From positions 10,044,001 to 10,108,000 of the forward strand of contig CATNEN010000007.1 in assembly GCA_950097015.1 (NCBI GenBank): a stretch of 64,000 bases of DNA, given 5' to 3'. Position numbers and translations under genes: made by a program. This DNA is from Macrostomum hystrix (taxonomy: Eukaryota; Animalia; Platyhelminthes). Under the pieces are notes generated by a model that was not told where the DNA came from, ran no database searches, and saw only the letters and a program-made list of their open reading frames with translations. Positions 5,866-20,506 of this stretch are shown here, one piece after another. Position 1 is the first letter of the stretch. Each line of letters starts with the position of its first letter.

Positions 5866-8800
5866 CTAGTAGCTGCGACCGAACAGCGTGTAGTACTGCG
5901 GCTTGCGGCCGCACTCCGGATGGACGCACTTGGTGTCCGGCCCGATCTCGTCCGGCTGGTTGAACGGAATGCACAAGCTCTTGGCGCCCATGGCCGGGGC
6001 GCCCTCTTCTACTACAGCGTTGCGCGCGCTGTCCTTCTTGATGAGGTCCTCGCAGGCGGCGTCGCCACAGAAGGGGGCCAGGATGAGGTGCTGCTTGTCC
6101 AGGGCGGCGCACAGAGCGGGCAGATCCGGACAGACGGACAGGTGGGCGTCACGCTCAGCCTTGGCGCGGGCGAACATGTCGGTCTGGATTTTTTCCAGCA
6201 GGGACTGCAGACTGGCGGCCAGGCCATCCTCCGACAGGGTCTGCTTCTCGCCCGAGTAGCGGACAGATGCCACCACCTGCGGGGGTAGGGCGGGTGGCGT
6301 TCGTGATTTCACTTAGTCTGCCTCCCCTATGAGTCCCACACACTCCTAATGAGTCTCACCCACTCCTTATGAGTCTCACCCACTCCTTATGAGTCTCACC
6401 CACTCCTTATGAGTCTCACCCACTCCTTATGAGTCTCACCCACTCCTTATGAGTCTCACCCACTCCTTATGAGTCTCACCCACTCCTTATGAGTCTCAAC
6501 CACTCCTTATGAGTCTCACCCACTCCTTATGAGTCTCACCCACTCCTTATGAGTCTCACCCACTCCTTATACCCACTCCTTATGAGTCCCACCCACTCCT
6601 AATGAGTCTCACCCACTCCTTATGAGTCTCACCCACTCCTTATACCCACTCCTTATGAGTCTCACCCACTCCTTATGAGTCTCACCCACTCCTTATACCC
6701 ACTCCTTATGAGTCTCACCCACTCCTTATGAGTCCCACCCACTCCTAATGAGTCTCACCCACTCCTTATGAGTCTCACCCACTCCTTATGAGTCTCACCC
6801 ACTCCTTATGAGTCTCACCCACTCCTTATGAGTCTCACCCACTCCTCATGAGTCCAACCCACCCCTTATGAGTCTCACCCAACCCATATGAGTCGCAGCA
6901 TCCTATTATGAGTCGCTCCCAGTCCAGTTTTATAATTTCTTGAAATACTGCTCGGAACTCACCTGCTTAGCCGCAATATCCCTCGGTCCGACCTCGATCC
7001 TCACTGGCACGCCCTTCAGCTCCCAATGGTTGAACTTCCAGCCGGGCGAGTAGTGTTCTCGCAGGTCGGCGTGCACCCGCAGGCCGCAGGCGCGCAGCTC
7101 TGCAGCCAGGGAGTTGCACTTGTCCAGCAGCGTCTGCTTCTCCTCCTCGGTGGTGCGCACCGTGAGGCCGCAGGGCACCAGCACCAGCTGGTACTGGGCC
7201 AGCCTGGGAGGCAGCACCAGGCCCTTGTCATCTCCATGCACCATCACCATGACACCGACGGACCGGGTGGTGATGGCCCAGGAGTTCTGGTGCACGTGGC
7301 GCTTCTCGCCAGTAGCCGGATCCTCGAACAGGATGTTGAACATGCGGGAGAAGTTCTGGCCCAGGTGGTGGCTGGTGGCGCCCTGGATTGCGCGGCCGCT
7401 GGCGCTAATGTACACCTCCACGGTGGTGGTGTAGTCGCCGCCGGCGAATTTCTCTTTTTCAGTTTTGCGGCCCTTGATGACCGGGATGGCCATCAGGTTC
7501 TCGTAAATATACTCGTACATGGACAGGATCTCTAGCACCTGAGTTTGGGATAAAAGGCGATGCGCAAATCTTAACGATGTTTCGATTCTGTGCACACAAC
7601 ACTAGCCTTCGGAGGTCGGCCTGAAAGTCTGGAAGAGTGCAGTGGCTGATGCAGCCTGAAGGTCTGGGAGGGTGGCTGATGCTGCCTAGGAGTAGAAGGC
7701 TAGGGTGCAGCCTGAGAGTAGAAGGCTAGGGTGCAGCCTGGGGGTAGAAGGCTAGGGTGCAGCCTGAGAGTAGAAGGCTAGGGTGCAGCCTGAGAGTAGA
7801 AGGCTAGGGTGCAGCCTGAGAGTAGAAGGCTAGGGTGCAGCCTGAGAGTAGAAGGCTAGGGTGCAGCCTGAGAGTAGAAGGCTTGGGTGCAGCCTGAGAG
7901 TAGAAGGCTTGGGTGCAGCCTGAGAGTAGAAGGCTAGGGTGCAGCCTGAGAGTAGAAGGCTAGGGTGCAGCCTGAGAGTAGAAGGCTAGGGTGCAGCCAG
8001 GGGGCAGAAGGCTAGGGTGCAGCCAGGGGGCAGAAGGCTAGGGTGCAGCCTGGGGGTAGAAGGCTAGGGTGCAGCCTGGGGGTAGAAGGCTAGGGTACAG
8101 CCTGGGGTAGAAGGCTAGGGTGCAGCCTGGGGTAGAAGGCTAGGGTGCAGCCTGAGAGTAGAAGGCTAGGGTGCAGCCTGGGGGTAGAAGGCTAGGGTGC
8201 AGCCTGGGGTTAGAAGGCTAGGGTGCAGCCTGGGGTTAGAAGGCTAGGGTGCAGCCTGGGGTTAGAAGGCTAGGGTGCAGCCTGGGGTTAGAAGGCTAGG
8301 GTGCAGCCTGGGGTTAGAAGGCTAAGCTAGGCGCAGGAAAAGCAGCTTACCTCAACCTCGGCCTCCTCCCTCGTGGCAAAGGCGGTGTGGCCCTCGTGCC
8401 AGAGGAACTCCCTGGTGCGCAGGAACGGCTGTGGGTGTTTGAACTCCCAGCGGACCACATTATTCCACTGGTTCACCTTGAGCGGCAGGTCTCGGTAGCT
8501 CTTGATCCACTTGGCGAAGGAGGGGTACATGACGGTCTCGGAGGTGGGCCGGATGGCGATGGGCTCAGCCAGGTCGGAGCGGCCGCTGCGCGTCACCCAG
8601 GCGACCTCGGGGGCGAAGTCGGCGATGTGGGTCTTCTCCTTTTCCAGCGCTGCATTGGACACGAACATGGGGAAGTAGACATTCTGCACTCCCATGCCCT
8701 TGATGCGGTCGTCAACGTAACGCTGGACCATCTCCCAGATGGAGTAGGCCCAGGGGCGCAGGATGTAGCAGCCAGAGATGTCGTAATACTCGATGAGCTC

Positions 8801-9330
8801 CGACTTTGTGATTACCTGAGGAAAACGATGGTATTTGGGGCATCGAATTCCCATGGAGATGAAATCTGAGGATTTGGGGAGTGCTGATTTTGCGATCTGG
8901 GTGATTGCCTTACTGTGGGATTTATGACCCGACTATTGGCGACACAGGCCTTTAAAATACACTGCTCAGCTGCATTGCTCAGCACACCAAAATATGCCAG
9001 GCTCACCTGTGAGTACCAGTCGGAAAAGTTGTCCGCCTTGGCGACCTCCATGCCCAGCCGTGTCTGATGCCGCCGGCCGGCCTCGTCCTGGTCATCGGCG
9101 CCAGCCTCTGCCGCTGCCGCCGGTGTGGGCTTAGCCGGCTTTGCCCCGCCGGCCTTCTTTTCGGGCCGGCCGCCAGCCAGGTCCACCCCCGTCAGGTCTT
9201 TGTAGCGCTTCTTCAGCTCCTTCAGGTTGGAGACTTCGGCGTCCACGACCGCTTTCTCAGCGCCACCGGACTTCAGCCCGCGGATCTTATCGCCCAGCTG
9301 ATCGATTTCACTCTTCAATGCGTCGGCCAT
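5866..9330 (-). CDS. PARS: Stand-alone cytosolic prolyl-tRNA synthetase with one N-terminal WHEP domain; complement(join(5866..6276,6963..7538,8351..8815,9007..9330)), 591 aa
   Basis: [48 protein letters not shown] is a WHEP domain. Also [19 protein letters not shown], motif 2 [32 protein letters not shown] and C-terminal LFGRSY. All introns are GT-AG, phase 0. An in-frame TAA lies two codons before the ATG. Confidence 0.95.
6325..6895. repeat. Intronic minisatellite, 20-bp unit (CACTCCTTATGAGTCTCACC)
   Basis: Tandem copies inside the last ProRS intron. Confidence 0.95.
7686..8325. repeat. Intronic minisatellite, ~25-bp unit (GAGAGTAGAAGGCTAGGGTGCAGCCT)
   Basis: Tandem copies inside ProRS intron 2. 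Confidence 0.95.
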
Positions 9331-9467
9331 TGCTTAAGAAATATCTGCTTCGCTGCGGGCCAGAATCCCAAAATCAGCGCGTCAGAGCTCTTGGCACCAG
9401 AAACCCACGGCTACTTAAACTTATCAGGGTTATAAACCTGATAGACCCAGGAATCTAATGTCGTTTT

Positions 9468-9970
9468 CTCAATAAACCCAGGAATACCACAAGCTTAATA
9501 AACCCAGGAATACCCTAAGCTCAATTAACCCAGGAATACCACAAGCTCAATAAACCCAGGAATACCACAAGCTCAATAAACCCAGGAATACCACCCGCTC
9601 AATAAACCCAGGAATACCACCAGTTCAATAAACCCAGGAATACCACCAGTTCAATAAACCCAGGAATACCACCAGTTCAATAAACCCAGGAATACCACCA
9701 GCTCAATAAACCCAGGAATACCACCAGCTCAATAAACCCTGGAATACCACCAGCTCAATAAACCCAGGAATACCACCAGCTCAATAAACCCAGGAATACC
9801 ACAAGCTCAATAAACCCAGGAATACCACCAGCTCAATAAACCCTGGAATACCACCAGCTCAATAAATCCAGGAATACCACAAGCTCAATAAACCCAGGAA
9901 TACCACCAGCTCAATAAACCCAGGAATACCACAAGCTCAATAAACCCAGGAATACCACAAGCTCAATAAA
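9468..9970. repeat. Minisatellite, 26-bp unit (GCTCAATAAACCCAGGAATACCACCA) between GluRS and ProRS
   Basis: About 19 tandem copies, nearly all containing AATAAA on the + strand. Confidence 0.95.
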
Positions 9971-10586
9971 CTATTAAAACTGTAAACTTATAAAGCAAAT
10001 AAAAGAAGCAAAGGAATTGCATTTAGAACAGGAAAAACTGGTTCCCAAAAACAAGAGCTGAGGGCAGCAGCGCATAATTGTTGCATCATTCGCAACTCAA
10101 TCCTTGGCTCTGTCTTTAAATAAATATCAAGACAGCTTGCTGCAGGTAAAATATGGGATAATGAGTAGCGAAGGGACCACAAACAGCTAAAAGGTACATA
10201 CTAGCTATAAAACTAGAATAAATACAATTTTAGCATTTCAATAACAGTTAAATCCACTCTCTATATATAGTTAAATACATAACCAAGATAGTACTAGATG
10301 TATTAATGCTATAGGGAAACACACAAGCACACACAGCAAGAAGGACTTAGTGATGGCAAAGGTTACAACCGCAGGACCAGTGAAGTTTAGTTAAAATTCG
10401 TTTTCTTCATTCAAAGCTAGGATAAACCAAGTGTTTATGACATGTCATGCAGTCCACAGTGTTGCTATCGGCTTAAAAACTGAAAACTGAAAAAGGTTTC
10501 ATTAATTTAGTCGATTAGTGAAAGCCGGTAGCAATACGCCCAAAGACGCACGCCCGAAGCCCATCTGTCAGGCCCCCATGCCGCCT

Positions 10587-13500
10587 TTATTCCAGGGCCT
10601 TCAGCATGTCCGGCTTGTAGGCCTGGCCAGTGGCCTGCTTGAACTGCTCCTTGGCCTGCATGAGCACTCCCAGAGCTGACTGCAGATCCGCCTTGCTGGC
10701 GCCGGCGTCCTTCATTGAGCGCACCTTGTCTCCAGCCTCTTTGATGAGGCGCAGCTGCTCCAGGCCCGATACAGCAGGGGCCTGCTGCTGCTGCTCCAGC
10801 TGCTTGAGCAGTTCTGGCTTATGCTCCAGGCCACTCTTGTCTTTAAACTCGGACTTTAGCGCCAGCAGCTGGTTGATGGCAGTTTTCACAGCGGCCTGAA
10901 CAGAGAAGACAAGTTTGTTAGCAGCGAGTCAAAGAGTCAGAGCCGATTTCTCCTTGAAGACTGGGATTAACTAAGACATGGAGGCAGTTGTCTGAAGACT
11001 GGGGATAGCTGAGGGAGATGGCGGCAGTTGTCTGAAGACTGGGGATAGCTGAGGGAGATGGCGGCAGTTGTCTGAAGACTGGGGATAGCTGAGGGAGATG
11101 GCGGCAGTTGTTTTCCGCGTCAGACCTGGATAGTAATTTAGACAGCGACACTGAGAAATCGACATCAGGTAGTTCGACAGATTTTTAACGACTGTCATCA
11201 TCAGTGCGACAGTGAGTCATCATTGTCTGACGAGACTGCTTAATAAAGTACATTGGACAGGACCTTAATAAAGGGTCCTAATGCTTAAAATCTAAACAAT
11301 GGACACCCAGCAGCTCAGAAAAAAATTAGAGTGCACACAGATTTTGACATCAGCGAACTAGTTTGAAGTCAGGGCGACTGTGTATTCATCACTGCAACTG
11401 AAGTCCAACTGCGAGCGTCCCATTGCCCTTCCCTCTTCTCAAATTCCTCTGAAGGTTACGGATCAGAAAAAAATTAGAGTGCACACAGATGACTTGCATC
11501 ACGGAATATTGCTAAGTCTCAGTGCGACTGTGAATTCATCATCTCTGGCCTTCATTGGGATAATTCCCAGACCCCGCAATCAACAAACCTGGTCTGCCTT
11601 CTTGGCCTTCAGATCCCTGACCAGGTCGCCCTGGGCTGCGATCTTCTCCAGCAGCGGCTTGAACTGCTGCATCCCGGAGCTCGCGGATGGCGCTGCGGCA
11701 GCTGGAGCTGCAGAATGGGGAGAGGTGGTCGCATTTGCTGCAGTCGCGGAGGCCTCAGCCTTCGTCAGCAGGTCGGCCTTCCAGTCCTGGCCAGATTCTT
11801 TCTTGAACTCTGCCTTCAGCTGCAGCAGCTGGTCAACGGCTGATTTCAAAGCGGCCTGAAAAATTCGAATCGCATTAATTGAAACTTATAAGTTTTTCAC
11901 AAAATAGGATATATTTTGAGATGGAAATTGAACCTAATACCCGACCTATGCAAATAAATAACGCGCTTACATGGCTTAGTCATCGAGTCAGAAAAAAATT
12001 AGAGTGCACACAGATGACTTGCATCACAGAATATTGCTAAGTCTCAGTGCGACAGTGAATTCATCATTTGAGACCAATTTATTGAATGCCTACGACTCGC
12101 ACACGACGTCCCGAGTTCGAATTCTTAACAAGCCCATATTAACCTTCGACTCGGTTGCAGAGATAAAGCTTAAGACCTCCGGTGCAAATGAAAGTCACTG
12201 TACTTCCACATTTCATGTGATAAACTAACCTGATCCGCCTTCTTGGCCTTCAGATCCCTGACCAGGTCGCCCTGGGCTGCGATCTTCTCGAGCAGCGGCT
12301 TGAACTGCTGCAGCCCGGAGCTCGCAGATGGCGCTGCAGCTGCGGGCGCTGCGGTTGCAGCTGCTGCAGGTGCGGAGGCTTTGGCCTTCTGCAATAATTC
12401 GGCCTTCCAGTCCTGGCCGGAGACTTTCTTGAACTCTGTCTTCAGCAGCAGCAGCTGGTCCACCGCTGACTTCACAGCGGCCTGAGGATCATGGTGGCAA
12501 TATATGCGCGAATTGTGACAAGTACTTGGCTAGTCTAAATGCAACTTGGCAATTTCTTTAATGAATTTGGTCGAACCCAATGCCGCCCTGACTCCCCACT
12601 AGATATCGTCACAATGACGTCTCAGGATCATTGCGTCAGAAAAAATGAGAGTGCACACAGAGATGACTCGCATCAAGGAAAACTGCAAAGCCTCAGTGCT
12701 ATAGCAAACTCATCACCAAAGACCAAACCATAACTACTCAAAGAAGGATCTATAGTTCCTACCCTTGTGACTGGTCACAAATCTCAATCGTTCACAGCGC
12801 TTAATATACAGATGCCTAAAATCTTAGCGATGGACACCCAGCGGCTCAGAAAAAAATTAGAGTGCAGACACATTTTGACATCAGCGAACTAAGTTAGAGT
12901 CAGTGCGACTGTGTATTCATCATAGCCACTGGAGTCCAACTGCCAGATGGACTGACAACACGTAAGCGCGGGGCGTAACCGGCTGCGGCATTTTTGAAAG
13001 GCGCCTTGGGTTCACTATGGGAAACATACGATAATTATGCAATACTATATTCAATACACTATTTTTATTATCAGCTATGATTTTTTTATCAGACATTCTC
13101 TCATTTTCCATTCTAATCGCTTCATAGGCCACGGATCAGAAAAAAATTAGAGTGCACACAGATGACTTGCATCACGGAATATTGCTAAGTCTCAGTGCGA
13201 CTGTGAATTCATCATCTCTGGCCTTCATTGGGATAACTCTGAGACACCGCGATTAACAAACCTGGTCCGCCTTCTTGGCCTTCAGATCCCTGACCAGGTC
13301 GCCCTGGGCTGCGATCTTCTCCAGCAGCGGCTTGAACTGCTGCATCCCAGAGCTCGCGGATGGCGCTGCAGCTTCTGGAGCTGCGCGCGCTGGAGCTGCA
13401 GGTGCGGGAGTTTTGCTCCCAGCCGCTGCAGGTGCGGAGGCCTCGGCCTTCTTTAGCAGTTCAGCCTTCCAGTCCTGGCCGGAGAGAGTTTTGAAGTCGG

Positions 13501-16500
13501 CCTTGAGCTGTAGCAGCTTCTTCACTTCGACCTGCACCGAGTTCTGATTAACGGTCAAGAATGTCAATAAACGATAGTTTGCGAATTTATATAAAGCCTA
13601 GAAATGTACGCCGATGTGCGCAGCATGAGTTAATGGCCCAGTCTCACATTGTCAGCCTTGGCAGCCTTCAAATCGCGCACTCGATTACCCTGCTCTTCAA
13701 TCTGCCGCAGCAGGTTGAGCCCACCAGCGTCTGAGGTGCCGCCATTGCCGACTGCCACGTTCGGAGGCGTCGAGGCTTTGGCCCCCCTGGCAGCCGATGC
13801 CTTCGAGGAGCTACCACCGCTGCTTCCCTTGACCGAAGTCGCAGCCGCTGATGTGACTATATGATTGACTTCCTTGTGCCGCGAGCCGGACTTCGGCATC
13901 TCTTTTTGATGACCGTCGGGCACAGCGATGAGGTAGCACGGCATGTTGGCGCCAGAGTGCGGACTCTGGCCGGCTGGCGAGTCGCAGATGAAGAAGCCGC
14001 GCCGCTGCAGCTGGATGATGTCGCCCTTGCGAAGGCTGGCCAGCCCGGCATCGCCCAGCATCAGCTCCTGCCGCTTGGAGTTGCGGTTCACAAACTGGCG
14101 GAAGTCCTCATCCTTGCCAACTAGCGGCTTGCTAATGATGTGATCGTAGTGAACGCACACGGCCTGCGCCAGATTGTCTGGCTGCTTGGACAGCCACGTG
14201 ACCTTCTGCGTCTTCTTGTAGTCGGTGTTGTCCAGCCGCAGCTCGGCCTCCACCTCGGTGACTCGGCCGTCGGCGCCGCGGATCAGTCGAGAGACAGACA
14301 AGTTGCCCCAGTTGATGAAGGTGACCAGCTCGCCTTCGCGCAGTGTCTCAGCGTCGGCGCCTTCAATAAGAAGCTCGCGCCAGTGCCAGAGGGTCTTGGT
14401 GCCGACGTCCGGGTTTTTCTGGTGCAGCGCAACCTGCAGGAGAACGAATGATATGAAAAAGCGAGCTGGGTAAGTTTTAAATGTTGAGAAGTCACCGACT
14501 CACCTCAGAGCTGTAGGGCTCAGCCCGGTCAAAGTTAGTCACGCGGACCAGCACGGCGTCCCGCTTCAGCAGCGCTGTGTACCTCGGCGCCACCGGATCG
14601 ATGACCTTCTTATTGAATGCCCAGATCTTGTCCCACTCCATCGTAGCGTTGGACTTGGCGAAGCCCTGCGCCAGTATGAACTGGCGAAGGCCCTCCAGAG
14701 TCATGCCGCGCCTCAGAATGCCTCTGACGGTGGGAAATCGCGGATCGTCCCAGCCGTCAACCAGGCCTTCATTAACAAACCAGGTTAGCTTGCGCTTGCT
14801 CAGCACCGTGTTTTGCAGGGCCAACCGGCTGAACTCCTCCAGTAAAGGCCGGCGCAAGCCTTCGAGTAGGTTATTATTGCGGAAGCACATGTTACAGATC
14901 ACCTACTGATAGTAACCCGTGTCAGATAAGGGCAGTGCAATCAGGGACTCACCAAGCGCATCAATAAACCAATTGTACTGAGCGTCGCGATCCTTGTACT
15001 CGAGAGTGCGCAGAGCGTGGGTCACGCCTTCGAGAGAGTCAACAATCGGGCAGGCGAAGTCGTAGGTTGGATAAACTCTAAACGGGAAAGTGGCGAGGTC
15101 ATTGCTAATAACGAGCACACCGATGCGGCATGGCATCATCGAATTAAGCAAACGCAACTCACTTGTACTTGCGACCTGTGCGCAGGTGCGGCTCGTCCTT
15201 GCACCTGTATATGGTGGGATCTCGCATGCAGCCATTGTCCGACTGCATGTCAATTTTGGCGCGCACGCAGCAGCGGCAGCCCAGCTGAGTGCCGGCTTTC
15301 ATCTCCTCCCACAGGCGAATGTTCTGCTCCACGGCTGCTCGCGAGTTGATGGGAGGTTGAGAAGTGAGAAGGCAGTGGAACTCGGTGCACGCAAGCAAAT
15401 CTACTCACAATTATTTCTATTCCGCGACACGACGCGCTTCTCCCGCTCGGCCTTCATGGTGTCGGGGTCCGTGTCGTCCACGAACGCTTTGCCTTCGCGC
15501 AGCATTCGCTCGCACAGCTGCAGCATGTGATCGAAGTGGTCCGAGGTGTGTGAGAAATGATCGTAGGTGATGCCCAGAGCGGCCACGTCCTCCAGGATGA
15601 CCTTGGCAAGGTAGTAATCAGTAAACAATGGATAGTATAGTTATGCTTTCATGTACATACGAGTATACACCAAGCGATTTCATGGACATCCGAGAATAAC
15701 TTGCTTTATTATAATCAGTCTCATCAGAAACCTCTAGAGTGGAAAGCTGAGCTACGTACATTAATCATCCGCAATTACCTGCTCAAACTCAGCAGTCTCT
15801 TTGGCCGGATTAGTGTCATCAAATCGCATGATGAGTCGGCCGCCGCAGCTGTTCCGATAATGCTGGTTTAAAAGCGCGGCTTTAGCATGGCCGATGTGCA
15901 GGTAGCCGCTGGCCTCTGGTGGGAATCTGACCACGACCTCGCCGTGCACGGCGCCGGCCAGTTCGCGGAATTTGCCGCCCTCCTCGAATTTTAACCCGCT
16001 GCCGCTACTGGTGCCATCGGCTTGCGTCGCCGGCGCCTTCAACGCGCCAACAGCTGCGCCAGCTTCGGCGCTGATGAGCTTGAAGTGGCGCTCGATGGCC
16101 GGCTGAGCAGCTCCGGCCTGCCTGGCCGCCTGCCAGCGCGGACAGCAGCTGAGCTGCGCCCACACGGCCAGGTCGGCCAGGCTGAGCTGGTCGCCAACTA
16201 GGTATGTCGTGTGAGTCAGTGCGGAGGCCAGCAGGTCGGGGCGCTGGCGCAGGTGCAGCAAGGAGTAGCGAACCCAATGGGTGACCTGCAGCTGCTGCTG
16301 GACATCCTGGGCCCGCAGCAGGGAGGCGCCCACCTGGCTGCCGGCCATCTGCTCGTACAGATCCGTGCTGTTTTGTAGAGGATTTGATCGTGGCGAAACT
16401 ATTAGTCATTTCACTTCATGGGTAGTTAATTATGAATGGATTCATATGAGGGGTGAATGGCATAGTGGGCCCCGATCTTGAATCCAAGGTGAGGCCTTTT

Positions 16501-19500
16501 AAATTTTGGGTGCAGTTTTGGAGAGGGACACAGTTGAGTGTGAACTGCCCGATATACATAGTCACAAAACATGTCAATTGTGCACAAGTGTGGTGTGTCT
16601 GAATACCCAGGTACCCATGCTGCAGGCCGTCTGTTGCCAAAAAAGCCTATGGCACCAGTGGAAAACAAAAATAAACATTTTTATCACGAGGTAGACATTG
16701 CATAGGAAATCAGAAACATACTTACATGGTGGCACATGGATCAGGCTTCTTAGCAGGAAGCTTACAATAATTTGTTACAGCTTGCTGAACTAAAAGTAAA
16801 AGTGAAATTTTTATTTACTTTTGTTCTTATCTGGCTATTGTTATCCACAAAATCTGAGACAAAGACCTAACACTTTATATATAATATATTTGATACCTAA
16901 AATTTTTAACAATGAGTCTTACTGATTCCACCTTTTTTGCTTAGCAGGATACACGTGTATATAGACACATACAAAAAAACAAAAAATTACCTGGCTCATT
17001 CAATTAGTTCATACATGCGCAACACCCGGCCGACCCAGCTGAACCGGCTGGATGAAACGAGGGCCAAGCAAGGTAAGTCGCAAAAACCAATTGACCAAGT
17101 TCAAAAAAATCAAAGGGGGACCAAGGGACAAAAAAGGAAGGCGTGAAGAAAAGGAAAAAGGGGAGAGAAAAAGAGAGCAAACTAAGTTGTAAATTTATCA
17201 ATGAAATGAACTAAGTCACAAATGAGAGCACTAAGTCATAAATAGAGCAAAAACTAAGTTGCACGGCCGGCTAAGATTTGGGAGGTTGCGCATGTATGAA
17301 TTAGTTATACAAAATAAGTGTGTAGAGTATATGTTGCTATAGGCTTAATCTGTGGTCATGTGATGTGTTTTTATTTGGTCAGACAGTTAAAAAAATTTAT
17401 GTTGTTGAATTTTGAGATTTGGCTTAAAATGTGGGCAAAATGATGTCTTTTGCATATCCTTACTATCTCAATACATAAACTTGCTTTAGGTGTTTCATTC
17501 ATAACATTCACTATTTAAATAGCTTTTGAACATATAGTTCATAGTATATAGATTATAGAATATATTTCTATTTTACATAGACTAGCTACACAAAATTGAC
17601 TCAAGTTACTACTATAGCCTAAGCCTTAGCTATAGAAACAGAATCTGGCTTGAATTATACCAATAAGTAGCCATATGAAATTTCTAATTGACCATAACAT
17701 TCTGATATAATAATTAAACACACTATAAGGCAATTATATATTTGTAGAGCCATTGTATTTGCACACTTGCTATGCCAATATTACCAATACCTAGATCAGG
17801 CTACAAATTACCTTTGTTAGCTTGGATAGCCAAACTTTAGCTACCTAAGAAACATTGGGCACAATAGAGAATAACAGAAGATGTAATGTGCAATGTACAA
17901 TTTTGCACTGAGCAAAAACCTGAATACAACCAGCACAAAGCTCTTAGATATTAGCCATTCCCCAGGTCTCTGCCTCTTTTGATCTAATTTTACTTGGTGG
18001 TGCCATCAACCATGAGGCCTAATTGGGCCCCAGATATACTAAGTGGACAGCTCAGCTCCCTAAACTGACAGACCCTGAAGGCACCATGGCATTGCACTAT
18101 TCTTGTCTAGCTGGCCTACAACCCACAGCTGGACATTATTTCACTAAAAGAGATATCAATCATGACAGAGACCAAGCCTAGTTAGACTAAGTACCTAGAC
18201 AACTAGATAAAGCCTTGTTTACACATTGGCAGATGGCTAGCCCTAGTATCTGTGAATACCTAGTTCCATAAGCCAACAACCCACGTGAATACCTAGTTCC
18301 ACAAGCCAGCAACCCATGTGAATACCTAGTTCCACAAGCCAACAACCCATGTGAATACCTAGTACCACAAGCCAACAACCCACCTGGTCTCTTTTGCAGG
18401 CTATAAGACTTGGGTGGTAAAAATACAAAAGACAACTAACACAAAAAATAATGTCCTTGTCCATGCTCATGAGTGCCCACATGTCATCCACTTTGACACC
18501 ATGGCATCTTGGATCCTAGTCACTTTGTCATACACTTTTTCATCAAATGACATTTTGCCAAAATATGGTTGCCCTTGGTCACTTTGTCATATACTAATGA
18601 AGGCACTGCCAAACATTAGTCACTTTGTCATCTGCAAATCAGCTCACTCCTCATATTTAGTCACTTCGTCATCTGCCAATCGGCTAGAGCCATAAAGTAA
18701 AATAATGAGACTAAAAAGTAAAGTAAAACAAGCAAAACATTTGAAAACTGTACGTAATTGTGCATTGTCAGATTAGAGCTCGGCGCGTAAATTAACCAGC
18801 ACTGGATCGCTCCACGAGCTTAGTGATGCTGCTGTTGCTGACAGCAACCCTAATATCAGCTCAAACAAATTGATGGGGTAAATGGTCAGCTGCCAGCTCA
18901 AATTGGAGGTCAGTGGGTGCTTTTGGATGCTGAGCTTCGTGGACACAGTTGGCGACATGGACTAGCTTACTCACACCTGGCATCACTGCTGGCTCAAGGT
19001 TTTCCCTGAGGTCCAGGAGCTTTGTTTCTATGATAGCTGCTGCTGATCAAAAGCAGTGGCATTGGGCCTTGTCCTTGGCAGCAGTGACGAGTTGAAGCTT
19101 CACAGCCTTGTTAACGGAAGGTTCACATAAGTGCGCAGCTCTGCCGGCACAAAATCCTTGAACAGGATCCTGAATAGCTGTTACTGGACACTTTAATCTC
19201 GCATTTCTGTGGGTGCATCTCCAGTGCTGTGTACCATTCCTGGTATAATTAAGCCCAAGCACGAACTCTGCACCACCAGTACACTGAATTGAAAGTGCTT
19301 TGCACTTCATTGTCCCCGACTCAATCATCTCAAATTCCTCGGCAGCATCGTCAAACTGTAATTGCTGTGGCTTAGGCCTCTCCATTGACTGCTCTGCAAG
19401 AGGCGGCCAGTCAAAAAAGAGACTCAGGTCTGCGGCATACAGTTCCACCAGCAAATCAATGGCAGGATCAACAGCAGTACCAGCAGGATCACCAGCAGCA

Positions 19501-20506
19501 GTTCGGCAATCAGTACAGAACCAGGTAAATGTCTCAAGGTGCATCAACTGTCTGTACGCCACAAGTGATATACCAGTCCTGCAGAAATGTTGTTGCCAGC
19601 CATTGCATGAATTTGGCCTTTTGGCCCTCTATTCTGGTCACTGACTGTTACTATGTGATCCTACATCTACAGCTTACTAGGCTACCTACAGCTTAATGAT
19701 CTTTACAAGGACTTCACCAACCAACAAAGCAATGACCATGGTGCCACTGTTGTGCTCTGTTAGACCCCACATGAGGTATCAGTTTGCAAATGCTGTTGCG
19801 CGCTTGAGGTGGAGCCGTTTTGAAAGCAGTAATGCTGACATCAGCACTACTATGAGAGCCGCTGCAGAAACAGATCCTAGACACTTCGTCATCTTACAAC
19901 TTTGTCATCCACTTGGAAGGTAGGACACTTCGTCATCCAGCCAATTGGCATGCTTTAAAGTTTGGTCAGTTCGTCATCTACTAATAACAAGCAATCAAGT
20001 TCGTCATCAATAAAGTGAGGGTGGGGTGGTGGGGCAGAGGTGTGAACACACTTCACACTCTAAATTGTCAAAAAGAGGTGTCAAAACTGATTTCATTATA
20101 AGTGTTGAAAGATAGGTGCTAACAAGATGTGAGGAGGGGTGGGGAGTGGTGGTTCTGTTCAAACTTTGAAAACTTTTGTTTTATAGATGACGAAGTGTCC
20201 TCAAGTCTAAGTCTCTTCGTCATCCACCCTTTAAGATATTGGATAGATCGTCATCTGGATGACGAAGTGTCCAGGTACCGCAGAAACAATGCTCCTGCTG
20301 CTGCAACTAGCAGATTAGGCCTAATTGATGCCAGTCTGGCAGAGATTCCTGACAATCAAGCAGGCATAGCGCGGCTCAGACGTTTGAATTTAAATGTTTA
20401 AATAATTTGACAAACAGAACAAAAAATGCCGATTATATATGGAATTGATCATTCATGATTCTAGCACAAGCAGTATATCAGTTTAAATATACTTACGAAC
20501 TTCCAT
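10587..20506 (-). CDS. EARS: Cytosolic glutamyl-tRNA synthetase with GST-like N-terminus and five C-terminal WHEP domains; complement(join(10587..10895,11589..11855,12230..12481,13262..13543,13648..14433,14504..14859,14953..15077,15163..15334,15409..15601,15779..16367,16726..16789,20497..20506)), ~1134 aa
   Basis: [20 protein letters not shown] (HIGH), [37 protein letters not shown] (KMSKS equivalent), [19 protein letters not shown]. The WHEP repeats end ...[13 protein letters not shown]. All exon phases are consistent. The two 5' micro-exons ([13 protein letters not shown]...) are inferred from phase fit and strong GTAAGT donors and are less certain. Confidence 0.92.
10955..11112. repeat. 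Intronic tandem repeat, 40-bp unit, ~3.5 copies
   Basis: GAAGACTGGGGATAGCTGAGGGAGATGGCGGCAGTTGTCT repeated. Confidence 0.85.
11120..11223 (-). ncRNA. Box C/D snoRNA candidate (divergent, longer member)
   Basis: On - strand: ATGATGA (C), CTCACTGTCGCA-CTGA (D'), TGATGT (C'), AATTACTATCCAGGT-CTGA (D). Flanks CGTCAGA/TCTGACG are complementary. Intronic and sense to the host. Confidence 0.7.
11315..11392 (-). ncRNA. Box C/D snoRNA candidate with 18S-complementary guide
   Basis: GTGATGA...CAGTCGCC-CTGA...TGATGT...GCACTCTAATTTTTTT-CTGA, with a partial terminal stem. Confidence 0.8.
11463..11542 (-). ncRNA. Box C/D snoRNA candidate with 18S-complementary guide
   Basis: ATGATGA-ATTCACAGTCGCA-CTGA...GTGATG...GCACTCTAATTTTTTT-CTGA. 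Confidence 0.82.
11988..12067 (-). ncRNA. Box C/D snoRNA candidate with 18S-complementary guide
   Basis: Same C, D', C', D architecture and guide as 11463..11542. Confidence 0.8.
12636..12716 (-). ncRNA. Degenerate box C/D snoRNA paralogue
   Basis: GTGATGA and both CTGA boxes are retained. The D guide has one substitution (CACTCTCATTTTTT) and the D' guide has diverged. Confidence 0.55.
12846..12923 (-). ncRNA. Box C/D snoRNA candidate with 18S-complementary guide
   Basis: ATGATGA...CTGA...TGATGT...GCACTCTAATTTTTTT-CTGA, closed by an 8-bp terminal stem CCAGTGGC/GCCGCTGG (one G-U pair). Confidence 0.85.
13136..13215 (-). ncRNA. Box C/D snoRNA candidate with 18S-complementary guide
   Basis: Core identical to 11463..11542; flanking AGGCCA/TGGCCT stem. 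Confidence 0.85.
17002..17306. mobile_element. MITE-like element in GluRS intron 1
   Basis: Perfect inverted repeat TTCATACATGCGCAAC (17008-17023) / GTTGCGCATGTATGAA (17285-17300) bracketing ~260 bp of non-coding DNA. Confidence 0.6.
18252..18382. repeat. Tandem repeat, 33-bp unit x4
   Basis: GTGAATACCTAGTTCCACAAGCCAACAACCCAT repeated. Confidence 0.85.
18511..19640 (-). mobile_element. Decayed Mutator-like (MULE) transposon remnant
   Basis: Terminus GGATCCTAGTCACTTTGTCAT with subterminal CACTT(C/T)GTCAT repeats. ORF 19047..19562 has a PHD-like end (WFCTDC) and a FLYWCH-like finger ([13 protein letters not shown]...HLC). Confidence 0.5.
19872..20279. mobile_element. ~408-bp MITE with TIRs and 8-bp TSD
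   Basis: TIRs (A)GATCCTAGACACTTCGTCATC / GATGACGAAGTGTCCAGGTACC; TSD GCAGAAAC at 19864-19871 and 20280-20287. A second copy lies at 38382-40130 in the opposite orientation. Confidence 0.9.

Follow-up and report, generated by a model that had tools for sequence, protein, structure and literature searches.

A probable cluster of paralogous box C/D snoRNA genes within EPRS introns of the flatworm Macrostomum hystrix

For box C/D snoRNAs, the nucleotide that fibrillarin methylates is the one opposite the fifth position counted upstream from box D or D'. Introns that hold several snoRNAs have been described in plants (rice and Arabidopsis) and in Drosophila, and imply cuts between the snoRNAs in addition to exonucleolytic trimming. 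The one published RNA whose guide resembles that of the present locus is fungal. Afu-298 of A. fumigatus (AM921940) was cloned three times and gives a 90-nt northern band, and was filed as an orphan with no predicted target (PMC2377427). In its treatment of this RNA, "The fungal snoRNAome" (PMC5824354) has Afu_298 as family CD_41, which is found across fungi but of which it reports "no trace" in Saccharomycotina. The Rfam family is RF01507, the consensus of which has the 3' end ...ACACUCUAAUUUUUUG(a/C)UGA.

The window analysed here is a 64,000-nt stretch of Macrostomum hystrix DNA, in which seven elements of box C/D type occupy three introns of a gene encoded on the minus strand. Introns 1, 2 and 3 hold three, one and three elements, respectively, all in the sense orientation of the host; the two introns with three elements each had been predicted. 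The host is identified as EPRS, a gene of the translation machinery, because its WHEP-TRS repeats are preceded on the same strand by GST-C and GluRS domains and followed by those for ProRS and anticodon binding. Host exons were matched to domains singly, and splice sites were read from the sequence; all three introns are of the GT-AG type, with boundaries of the form CAG/GTTTGT or GTTAGT ... TCAG/GCCGCT. A protein search with the WHEP exon gave no match above 45% identity, and a literature search found no report of snoRNAs in EPRS introns. Intron 3 additionally carries a 40-nt tandem repeat (11111-10975). The features are as follows, in the direction of host transcription and with positions given in window coordinates.

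12482..13261 (-): host intron 1, GTTTGT...CAG, holding T1a, T2a and T1d
13126..13224 (-): snoRNA T1a; C-to-D 13215-13136; box C 13215-13209, D' 13195-13192, C' 13175-13169, D 13139-13136; 6-bp terminal stem AGGCCA (13224-13219) / TGGCCT (13131-13126)
12837..12933 (-): snoRNA T2a, second subtype; C-to-D 12923-12846; box C 12923-12917, D' 12903-12900, C' 12884-12878 (CTGATGT), D 12849-12846; 9-bp terminal stem TCCAGTGGC/GCCGCTGGG (12933-12925 / 12845-12837)
12636..12716 (-): snoRNA T1d, a diverged paralogue; box C GTGATGA; D guide GCACTCTCATTTTTT
12230-12481 (-): second WHEP-repeat exon, with further WHEP exons on both sides
11856..12229 (-): host intron 2, GTTAGT...CAG, holding T1b
11988..12067 (-): snoRNA T1b, the sole element of intron 2; core 98% identical to that of T1a
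11589..11855 (-): WHEP-repeat exon of EPRS (Pfam PF00458 WHEP-TRS, E about 1e-14)
10896..11588 (-): host intron 3, GTTTGT...CAG, holding T1c, T2b and S
11451..11553 (-): snoRNA T1c; C-to-D 11542-11463; core the same as that of T1a; possible distal stem GAAGG (11553-11549) / CCTTC (11455-11451)
11306..11402 (-): snoRNA T2b; C-to-D 11392-11315; box C GTGATGA 11392-11386, D' 11372-11369, C' 11353-11347, D 11318-11315; 6-bp stem 11402-11397 / 11311-11306
11161..11227 (-): short paralogue S; C-to-D 11223-11165; box C 11223-11217, D' 11204-11201 abutting C' TGATGA 11200-11195, D 11168-11165; 4-bp stem GACA/TGTC

The original prediction, made from the letters of the window, described an element of about 80 nt that recurs at 11315, 11463, 11988, 12636, 12846 and 13136 and reads C-guide-D'-C'-guide-D on the host strand. 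These six positions are the exact low ends of the C-to-D spans, and the box order is seen in six elements. In each of them, box C (RTGATGA) is followed by a 13-nt guide, D' (CTGA), a spacer of 16-17 nt, C' (TGATGC or TGATGT), about 15 nt, GCACTCTAATTTTTTT and box D (CTGA), with a C-to-D length of 78-81 nt; that of S is 59 nt. The boxes are canonical in order and spacing in every copy. Each of the seven elements carries RUGAUGA (box C) close to its 5' end and CUGA (box D) close to its 3' end, and in an alignment of the copies the invariant columns are the boxes and the D guide. The D' box (CUGA) is constant across copies, and the C' box is degenerate (UGAUGC or UGAUGU), slight degeneracy of C' being usual in box C/D snoRNAs.

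Two subtypes can be distinguished. T1 comprises three near-identical copies (T1a, T1b and T1c) and the diverged T1d, whose core is 79% identical to that of T1a and whose D' guide differs. T2 comprises T2a and T2b, which are 90% identical. The original prediction had missed this division, as well as the second (D') guide and the damaged D guide of T1d (12716-12636). Terminal stems differ in sequence from copy to copy, as between T1a and T2a. The stem foreseen for T2a near 12846-12923 is present, with 8-9 bp including one G-U, and can also be written CCAGTGGC/GCCGCTGG (12932-12838). The minimum free energy folds of T1a and T2a are closed by their terminal stems, with z-scores of -2.9 and -2.7, respectively. 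A box-proximal stem is clear in T1a, T2a, T2b and S, and poor in T1b (weak, 3 bp), T1c (where the only pairing is distal) and T1d (where no terminal stem is convincing).

The seventh element had been expected to be a longer variant starting at 11120, and it is in this respect that the expectation and the locus part: S is better read as shorter than the other copies, not longer. A 104-nt version of S ending at the distal CTGA (11123-11120) was considered and rejected, as its guide gave nothing above shuffled controls among 18S, 28S, 5.8S, U2, U5 and U6 and the only possible terminal stem uses up box D. The 5' half of S is T1b-like, with the box C and D' guide common to that copy, and the D guide is different, with no significant target when the same six RNAs were compared with shuffled controls. 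Against Rfam, S scores 16.6 bits to sR1, a weak match of generic C/D type. It may be an orphan guide or a decaying copy.

As a whole, the locus probably represents a group of paralogous box C/D snoRNA genes lodged in EPRS introns, and their products would be expressed, processed and engaged in methylation. The pattern of conservation among the copies supports this reading. Between T1 and T2, identity is 93% in box C, 86% in the D' guide, 100% in the D' box, 83% in the C' box and 100% in both the D guide and box D, but 32% in the spacer and about 20% in the flanks. Copy-to-copy identity falls sharply at the edges of boxes C and D. Within T1, comparison of T1a with T1b, which lie in different introns, gives flanks of only 39% identity around their nearly invariant cores, which bears out the earlier remark that the surrounding intron diverges. 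A conserved core with diverged flanks and spacer requires selection, or else gene conversion limited to the snoRNA.

The copies also bear the marks of duplication. One duplicated block (D3) comprises the 3' part of an exon together with T1 and is 95% identical over 259 nt between the T1a region and T1c; another (D6) comprises T2 with its flanks, including T2b, and is 87% identical over 135 nt. These blocks indicate that the snoRNAs were amplified along with the WHEP exon-intron unit. It would therefore be possible to regard the elements as mostly dead snoRNA passengers of this duplication, with at most one or two functional copies. Part of their similarity would then be merely recent, as the presence of exon sequence in the duplicated blocks suggests, and the mismatched guide and missing stem of T1d, the weak stem of T1b and the targetless S are what such decay might be expected to leave. 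Passengers would not, however, be expected to keep a 98% core in T1b against flanks that have drifted so far, nor would T1 and T2 be expected to retain boxes and guides and not the spacer, and a perfect 16-nt D guide is kept in five copies. This explanation is considered improbable.

The case for a cluster of guide snoRNAs is strengthened by complementarity to rRNA from the same genome. It had been predicted that the guide is complementary to a conserved 18S segment and that, by the fifth-nucleotide rule, methylation falls on the fourth A in an A6 run. The genome's own 18S (1813 nt) does contain GAAAAAAUUAGAGUGC, within a surrounding segment that reads UUUACUUUGAAAAAAUUAGAGUGCUCAAAGC, and the D guide GCACUCUAAUUUUUUU pairs with it through 15 Watson-Crick base pairs and one terminal G-U. 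In this duplex, the fourth A in the run, 18S-A767, lies opposite the fifth nucleotide before box D. The score of this pairing was matched by none of 200 shuffled guides, and the duplex extends up to 19 bp with one mismatch. In T2a, the D guide likewise forms 16 bp with 18S and selects A767. Perfect CTGA-adjacent 11-mer matches to mature rRNA number nine on both strands of the 64-kb window, and seven of the nine lie in these elements. The claim that most copies carry the 18S guide is sound for the five with perfect guides; the guide is weakened in T1d and lacking in S. The D guide of T1d has one mismatch to 18S and one U fewer, so that the register is moved to A768; no variant 18S fitting it was found in the genome, and its targets were not significant, with nothing above shuffled controls among 18S, 28S, 5.8S, U2, U5 and U6.

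A second target is suggested by the D' guide. In T1a and T1c, UUCACAGUCGC forms 11 Watson-Crick base pairs with GCGACUGUGAA in the 28S of this genome (C15:12246-16002) and selects A2801, in the variable loop that immediately precedes GUGAAAUACCACUAC; 2 of 200 shuffled guides scored as high. In T1b, this pairing is broken by an A>T change in the D' guide, and T2 retains 9 bp (in T2a, only 9 bp, again at A2801), so that support for the second target comes from two copies, which are identical. Judged from the sequences, the 18S target is strongly supported and the 28S target moderately supported, and the methylations themselves are predicted.

By our own alignment, the human equivalent of 18S-A767 is A805, which neighbors the known Cm797 and Um799. 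We know of no methylation at the equivalent site in yeast or human, and literature searches for 'Am805' and '18S-A805' found no mention of one. Searches with the guide and target sequences returned primers and probes only, and searches on Macrostomum snoRNAs and on flatworm RiboMeth-seq found nothing.

That this site does not figure among familiar methylation sites might suggest that the RNAs serve mainly not to guide methylation but as pre-rRNA folding chaperones at ES6, close to where snR30/U17 binds, acting through the 16-19-bp duplex. The length of the duplex would suit such a role, as would the position of the target: the rm1 site of snR30, as placed from the constructs in PMC9176245, is about 50 nt further downstream. 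Methylation nevertheless needs exactly the register to box D that is seen here, and the D' and C' boxes with their second guide suit an ordinary modification guide. Methylation guides of 10-21 bp are normal. The same register recurs in the unrelated lineages described below, although the scan pattern itself imposed it. A role mainly in chaperoning is considered very unlikely.

Six to seven repeats within 2 kb could also bring to mind a transposon or other dispersed repeat that mimics snoRNA boxes, but the element has six matches in the 220-Mb genome, all at the EPRS locus and on one strand, and neither terminal repeats nor coding capacity, and its rRNA complementarity is in the correct register, so that this explanation is exceedingly improbable. 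The exact pattern of guide plus box D is similarly restricted to the EPRS locus within the 220 Mb. Genome-wide dispersal of the element had been named as an outcome that would speak against snoRNAs, and the lack of copies outside the locus, together with the single orientation, rules out a dispersed repeat.

Taking the locus as a paralogous cluster of snoRNA genes, the following course of events can be proposed. The RNAs would be transcribed within the EPRS pre-mRNA, and a box C/D snoRNP would form on the C/D and C'/D' motifs of each, after which exonucleases would trim the element to roughly 80-100 nt. In the introns with three elements, cuts between the elements would also be needed; a polycistron with endonucleolytic release can reasonably be inferred for these introns, and would not be new. 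The 16-nt guide upstream of box D would pair with GAAAAAAUUAGAGUGC in the 18S, where the ES6H2 (ES6 helix 2) segment begins, and would place fibrillarin on 18S-A767. In T1a and T1c, the 11-nt D' guide would also direct methylation of 28S-A2801, in the loop 5' of GUGAAAUACCACUAC. Copy number would have been raised by tandem duplication of the unit of WHEP exon plus intron, and in T1d and S the guides would have been lost or changed.

The suggestion that these RNAs represent an undescribed family is borne out only in part. An Rfam search of the whole window at gathering score gave no family match. The best sub-threshold score was to SNORD103 (RF00188, SNORD103/SNORD85), at 27.5 bits, where the cut-off is 45. 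SNORD103/SNORD85 has the same general C/D layout and length as the elements, and the alignment misses the guide; with a score under the cut-off and the guide not aligned, kinship to it was rejected as not meaningful. A search at E<=10 otherwise gave just generic sub-threshold C/D matches. Among 4227 Rfam families, a guide-centred local match was obtained to Afu_298 alone. It covers model positions 73-93 only of RF01507 and scores 16.5 bits against a cut-off of 40; in a search with 2.5 kb of the window, Afu_298 was absent from the matches.

Metagenome contigs were scanned with the pattern TGATGA-N45-75-CACTCTAATTTTTT-N-CTGA. This returned at least 80 loci, and the matches listed comprise 42 distinct sequences in about a dozen unrelated groups. 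Box C is well formed and a terminal stem is present in most of these same-guide sequences, the mean stem length being 5.2 bp as against 2.45 bp for mismatched flanks. One fungal-looking group matches RF01507 at 46-75 bits. In another group, the neighboring TPR protein is closest to those of Bathycoccus (45%) and Pyramimonas, so that the contig is assigned to a prasinophyte green alga. The guide and its register are thus not peculiar to the flatworm, being common to the 42 metagenome sequences, of which the fungal ones fall in RF01507; as first worded, the suggestion of an undescribed family is therefore not supported. The recurrence also lends the guide independent support. What the flatworm copies have in common with Afu_298 is limited to the guide and box D.

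It is possible, if somewhat doubtful, that the cluster is the first animal member of an ancient guide that directs 2'-O-methylation to the fourth A in the conserved 18S GAAAAAAUUAGAGUG in ES6. Such a guide might go back to the ancestor of fungi, animals and green plants, and the flatworm would have added amplification of the WHEP unit and a lineage-specific guide to 28S-A2801. Under this proposal, the guide would have been overlooked because it is absent in budding yeast and, as far as is known, in vertebrates, and because Afu-298, the sole member in print, was catalogued as an orphan. The absence of Afu_298 from Saccharomycotina would explain why budding yeast is without this site.

The cluster leaves the understanding of box C/D snoRNA function unchanged. 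What it offers is two predicted rRNA methylation sites and a well-defined, testable snoRNA family for a phylum without a known rRNA modification map, and a link between the orphan fungal Afu_298/CD_41, algal snoRNAs and one conserved 18S target. That shared target is missing, to our knowledge, from the standard yeast and human maps. The locus also presents a clean case in which snoRNA copy number appears to have grown as a by-product of WHEP exon duplication.

Comparison with the described systems can now be made more closely. Like the flatworm copies, Afu_298 has a 3' end of the form ACACUCUAAUUUUUU-N-(C/A)UGA, with an antisense element that matches theirs and sits in the same register relative to box D: its guide ACACUCUAAUUUUUU stands at a fixed distance from box D, and the window copies carry GCACUCUAAUUUUUUU-CUGA. 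With guide and register the same, the predicted target of Afu_298 is the same 18S adenosine. Afu_298 differs in having a conserved 5' element, UUUUUAACCCC, after box C, where the flatworm copies have AUUCACAGUCGCA instead. The fungal RNA is also mostly intergenic, whereas the flatworm copies are intronic, and the remainder of the RNA is unrelated. As the shared guide is dictated by the target, it fits common ancestry and convergence alike. On sequence grounds, the flatworm copies are Afu_298-like in the D guide, yet they are not members of RF01507 by the Rfam criterion.

The metagenome snoRNAs resemble the flatworm copies in having a box C, a terminal stem, a length of 62-92 nt and the guide CACUCUAAUUUUUU-N-CUGA, but differ in their bodies and 5' guides. 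None of them adjoins EPRS exons, which tblastn did not find in the 80 loci retrieved, and the EPRS location was not seen elsewhere. The intronic clusters of plants and Drosophila are alike in having several snoRNAs per host intron. The feature particular to the flatworm cluster is its protein-coding host, in which repeated WHEP exons have been duplicated together with the introns that bear the snoRNAs.

The host gene of the snoRNA cluster, EPRS, lies on the minus strand at window 5866-20506, where a domain search confirmed the domain order GluRS, WHEP, ProRS. A repeat comparison shows that a block comprising the 3' part of a WHEP exon and one snoRNA gene of each of the two subtypes, T1 and T2, has been duplicated within this gene (window 11281-11711 versus 12812-13384). 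The aligned segments of the two copies are 95% identical over 259 nt and 87% identical over 135 nt, and in the upstream copy only, an extra AT-rich spacer of about 140 nt separates T1a from T2a. Host intron 3 also contains a tandem repeat (repeat family D7; window 10975-11111) with about 3.4 copies of the 40-nt unit GAGATGGCGGCAGTTGTCTGAAGACTGGGGATAGCTGAGG, placed between the short snoRNA paralogue S and the 3' splice site.

The T1 subtype has a further internal feature. In the T1 copies (T1a at window 13215-13136), the D' guide CACAGUCGCAC is complementary to GUCAUCUGUGUGC, the stretch directly 5' of the D guide, and in predicted folds the two pair as an internal hairpin. An A>U change in T1b weakens this predicted hairpin.

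The rDNA units of Macrostomum hystrix, which contain an 18S of 1813 nt and a 28S of 3757 nt, repeat at about 11.6 kb on contigs C15, C17 and C42, with some units inverted in orientation on C17. Across the whole window and on both strands, only two CTGA-adjacent 11-mers besides those of the cluster are perfectly complementary to mature rRNA:

CTGA-adjacent 11-mers outside the snoRNA cluster (window positions)
14286, minus strand: 11-mer matching 18S G878
59083, plus strand: 11-mer matching 28S G3705

Because neither is preceded by a box C, and because the 11-mer at 14286 falls within a coding exon, both are probably chance matches.

Box C/D snoRNAs with the same guide as the cluster also occur as tandem copies on metagenome contigs, with two copies about 800 nt apart at locus L053 and about 1.6 kb apart at loci L092 and L102. 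The contigs of all three loci lack long ORFs, and an Rfam search returned no match for their snoRNAs. The tandem snoRNAs differ from each other, with one terminal stem, TTGCAACCT / AGGTTGCA, common to both. These pairs of two different snoRNAs sharing a guide resemble the pairing of T1 and T2 in the Macrostomum hystrix cluster.
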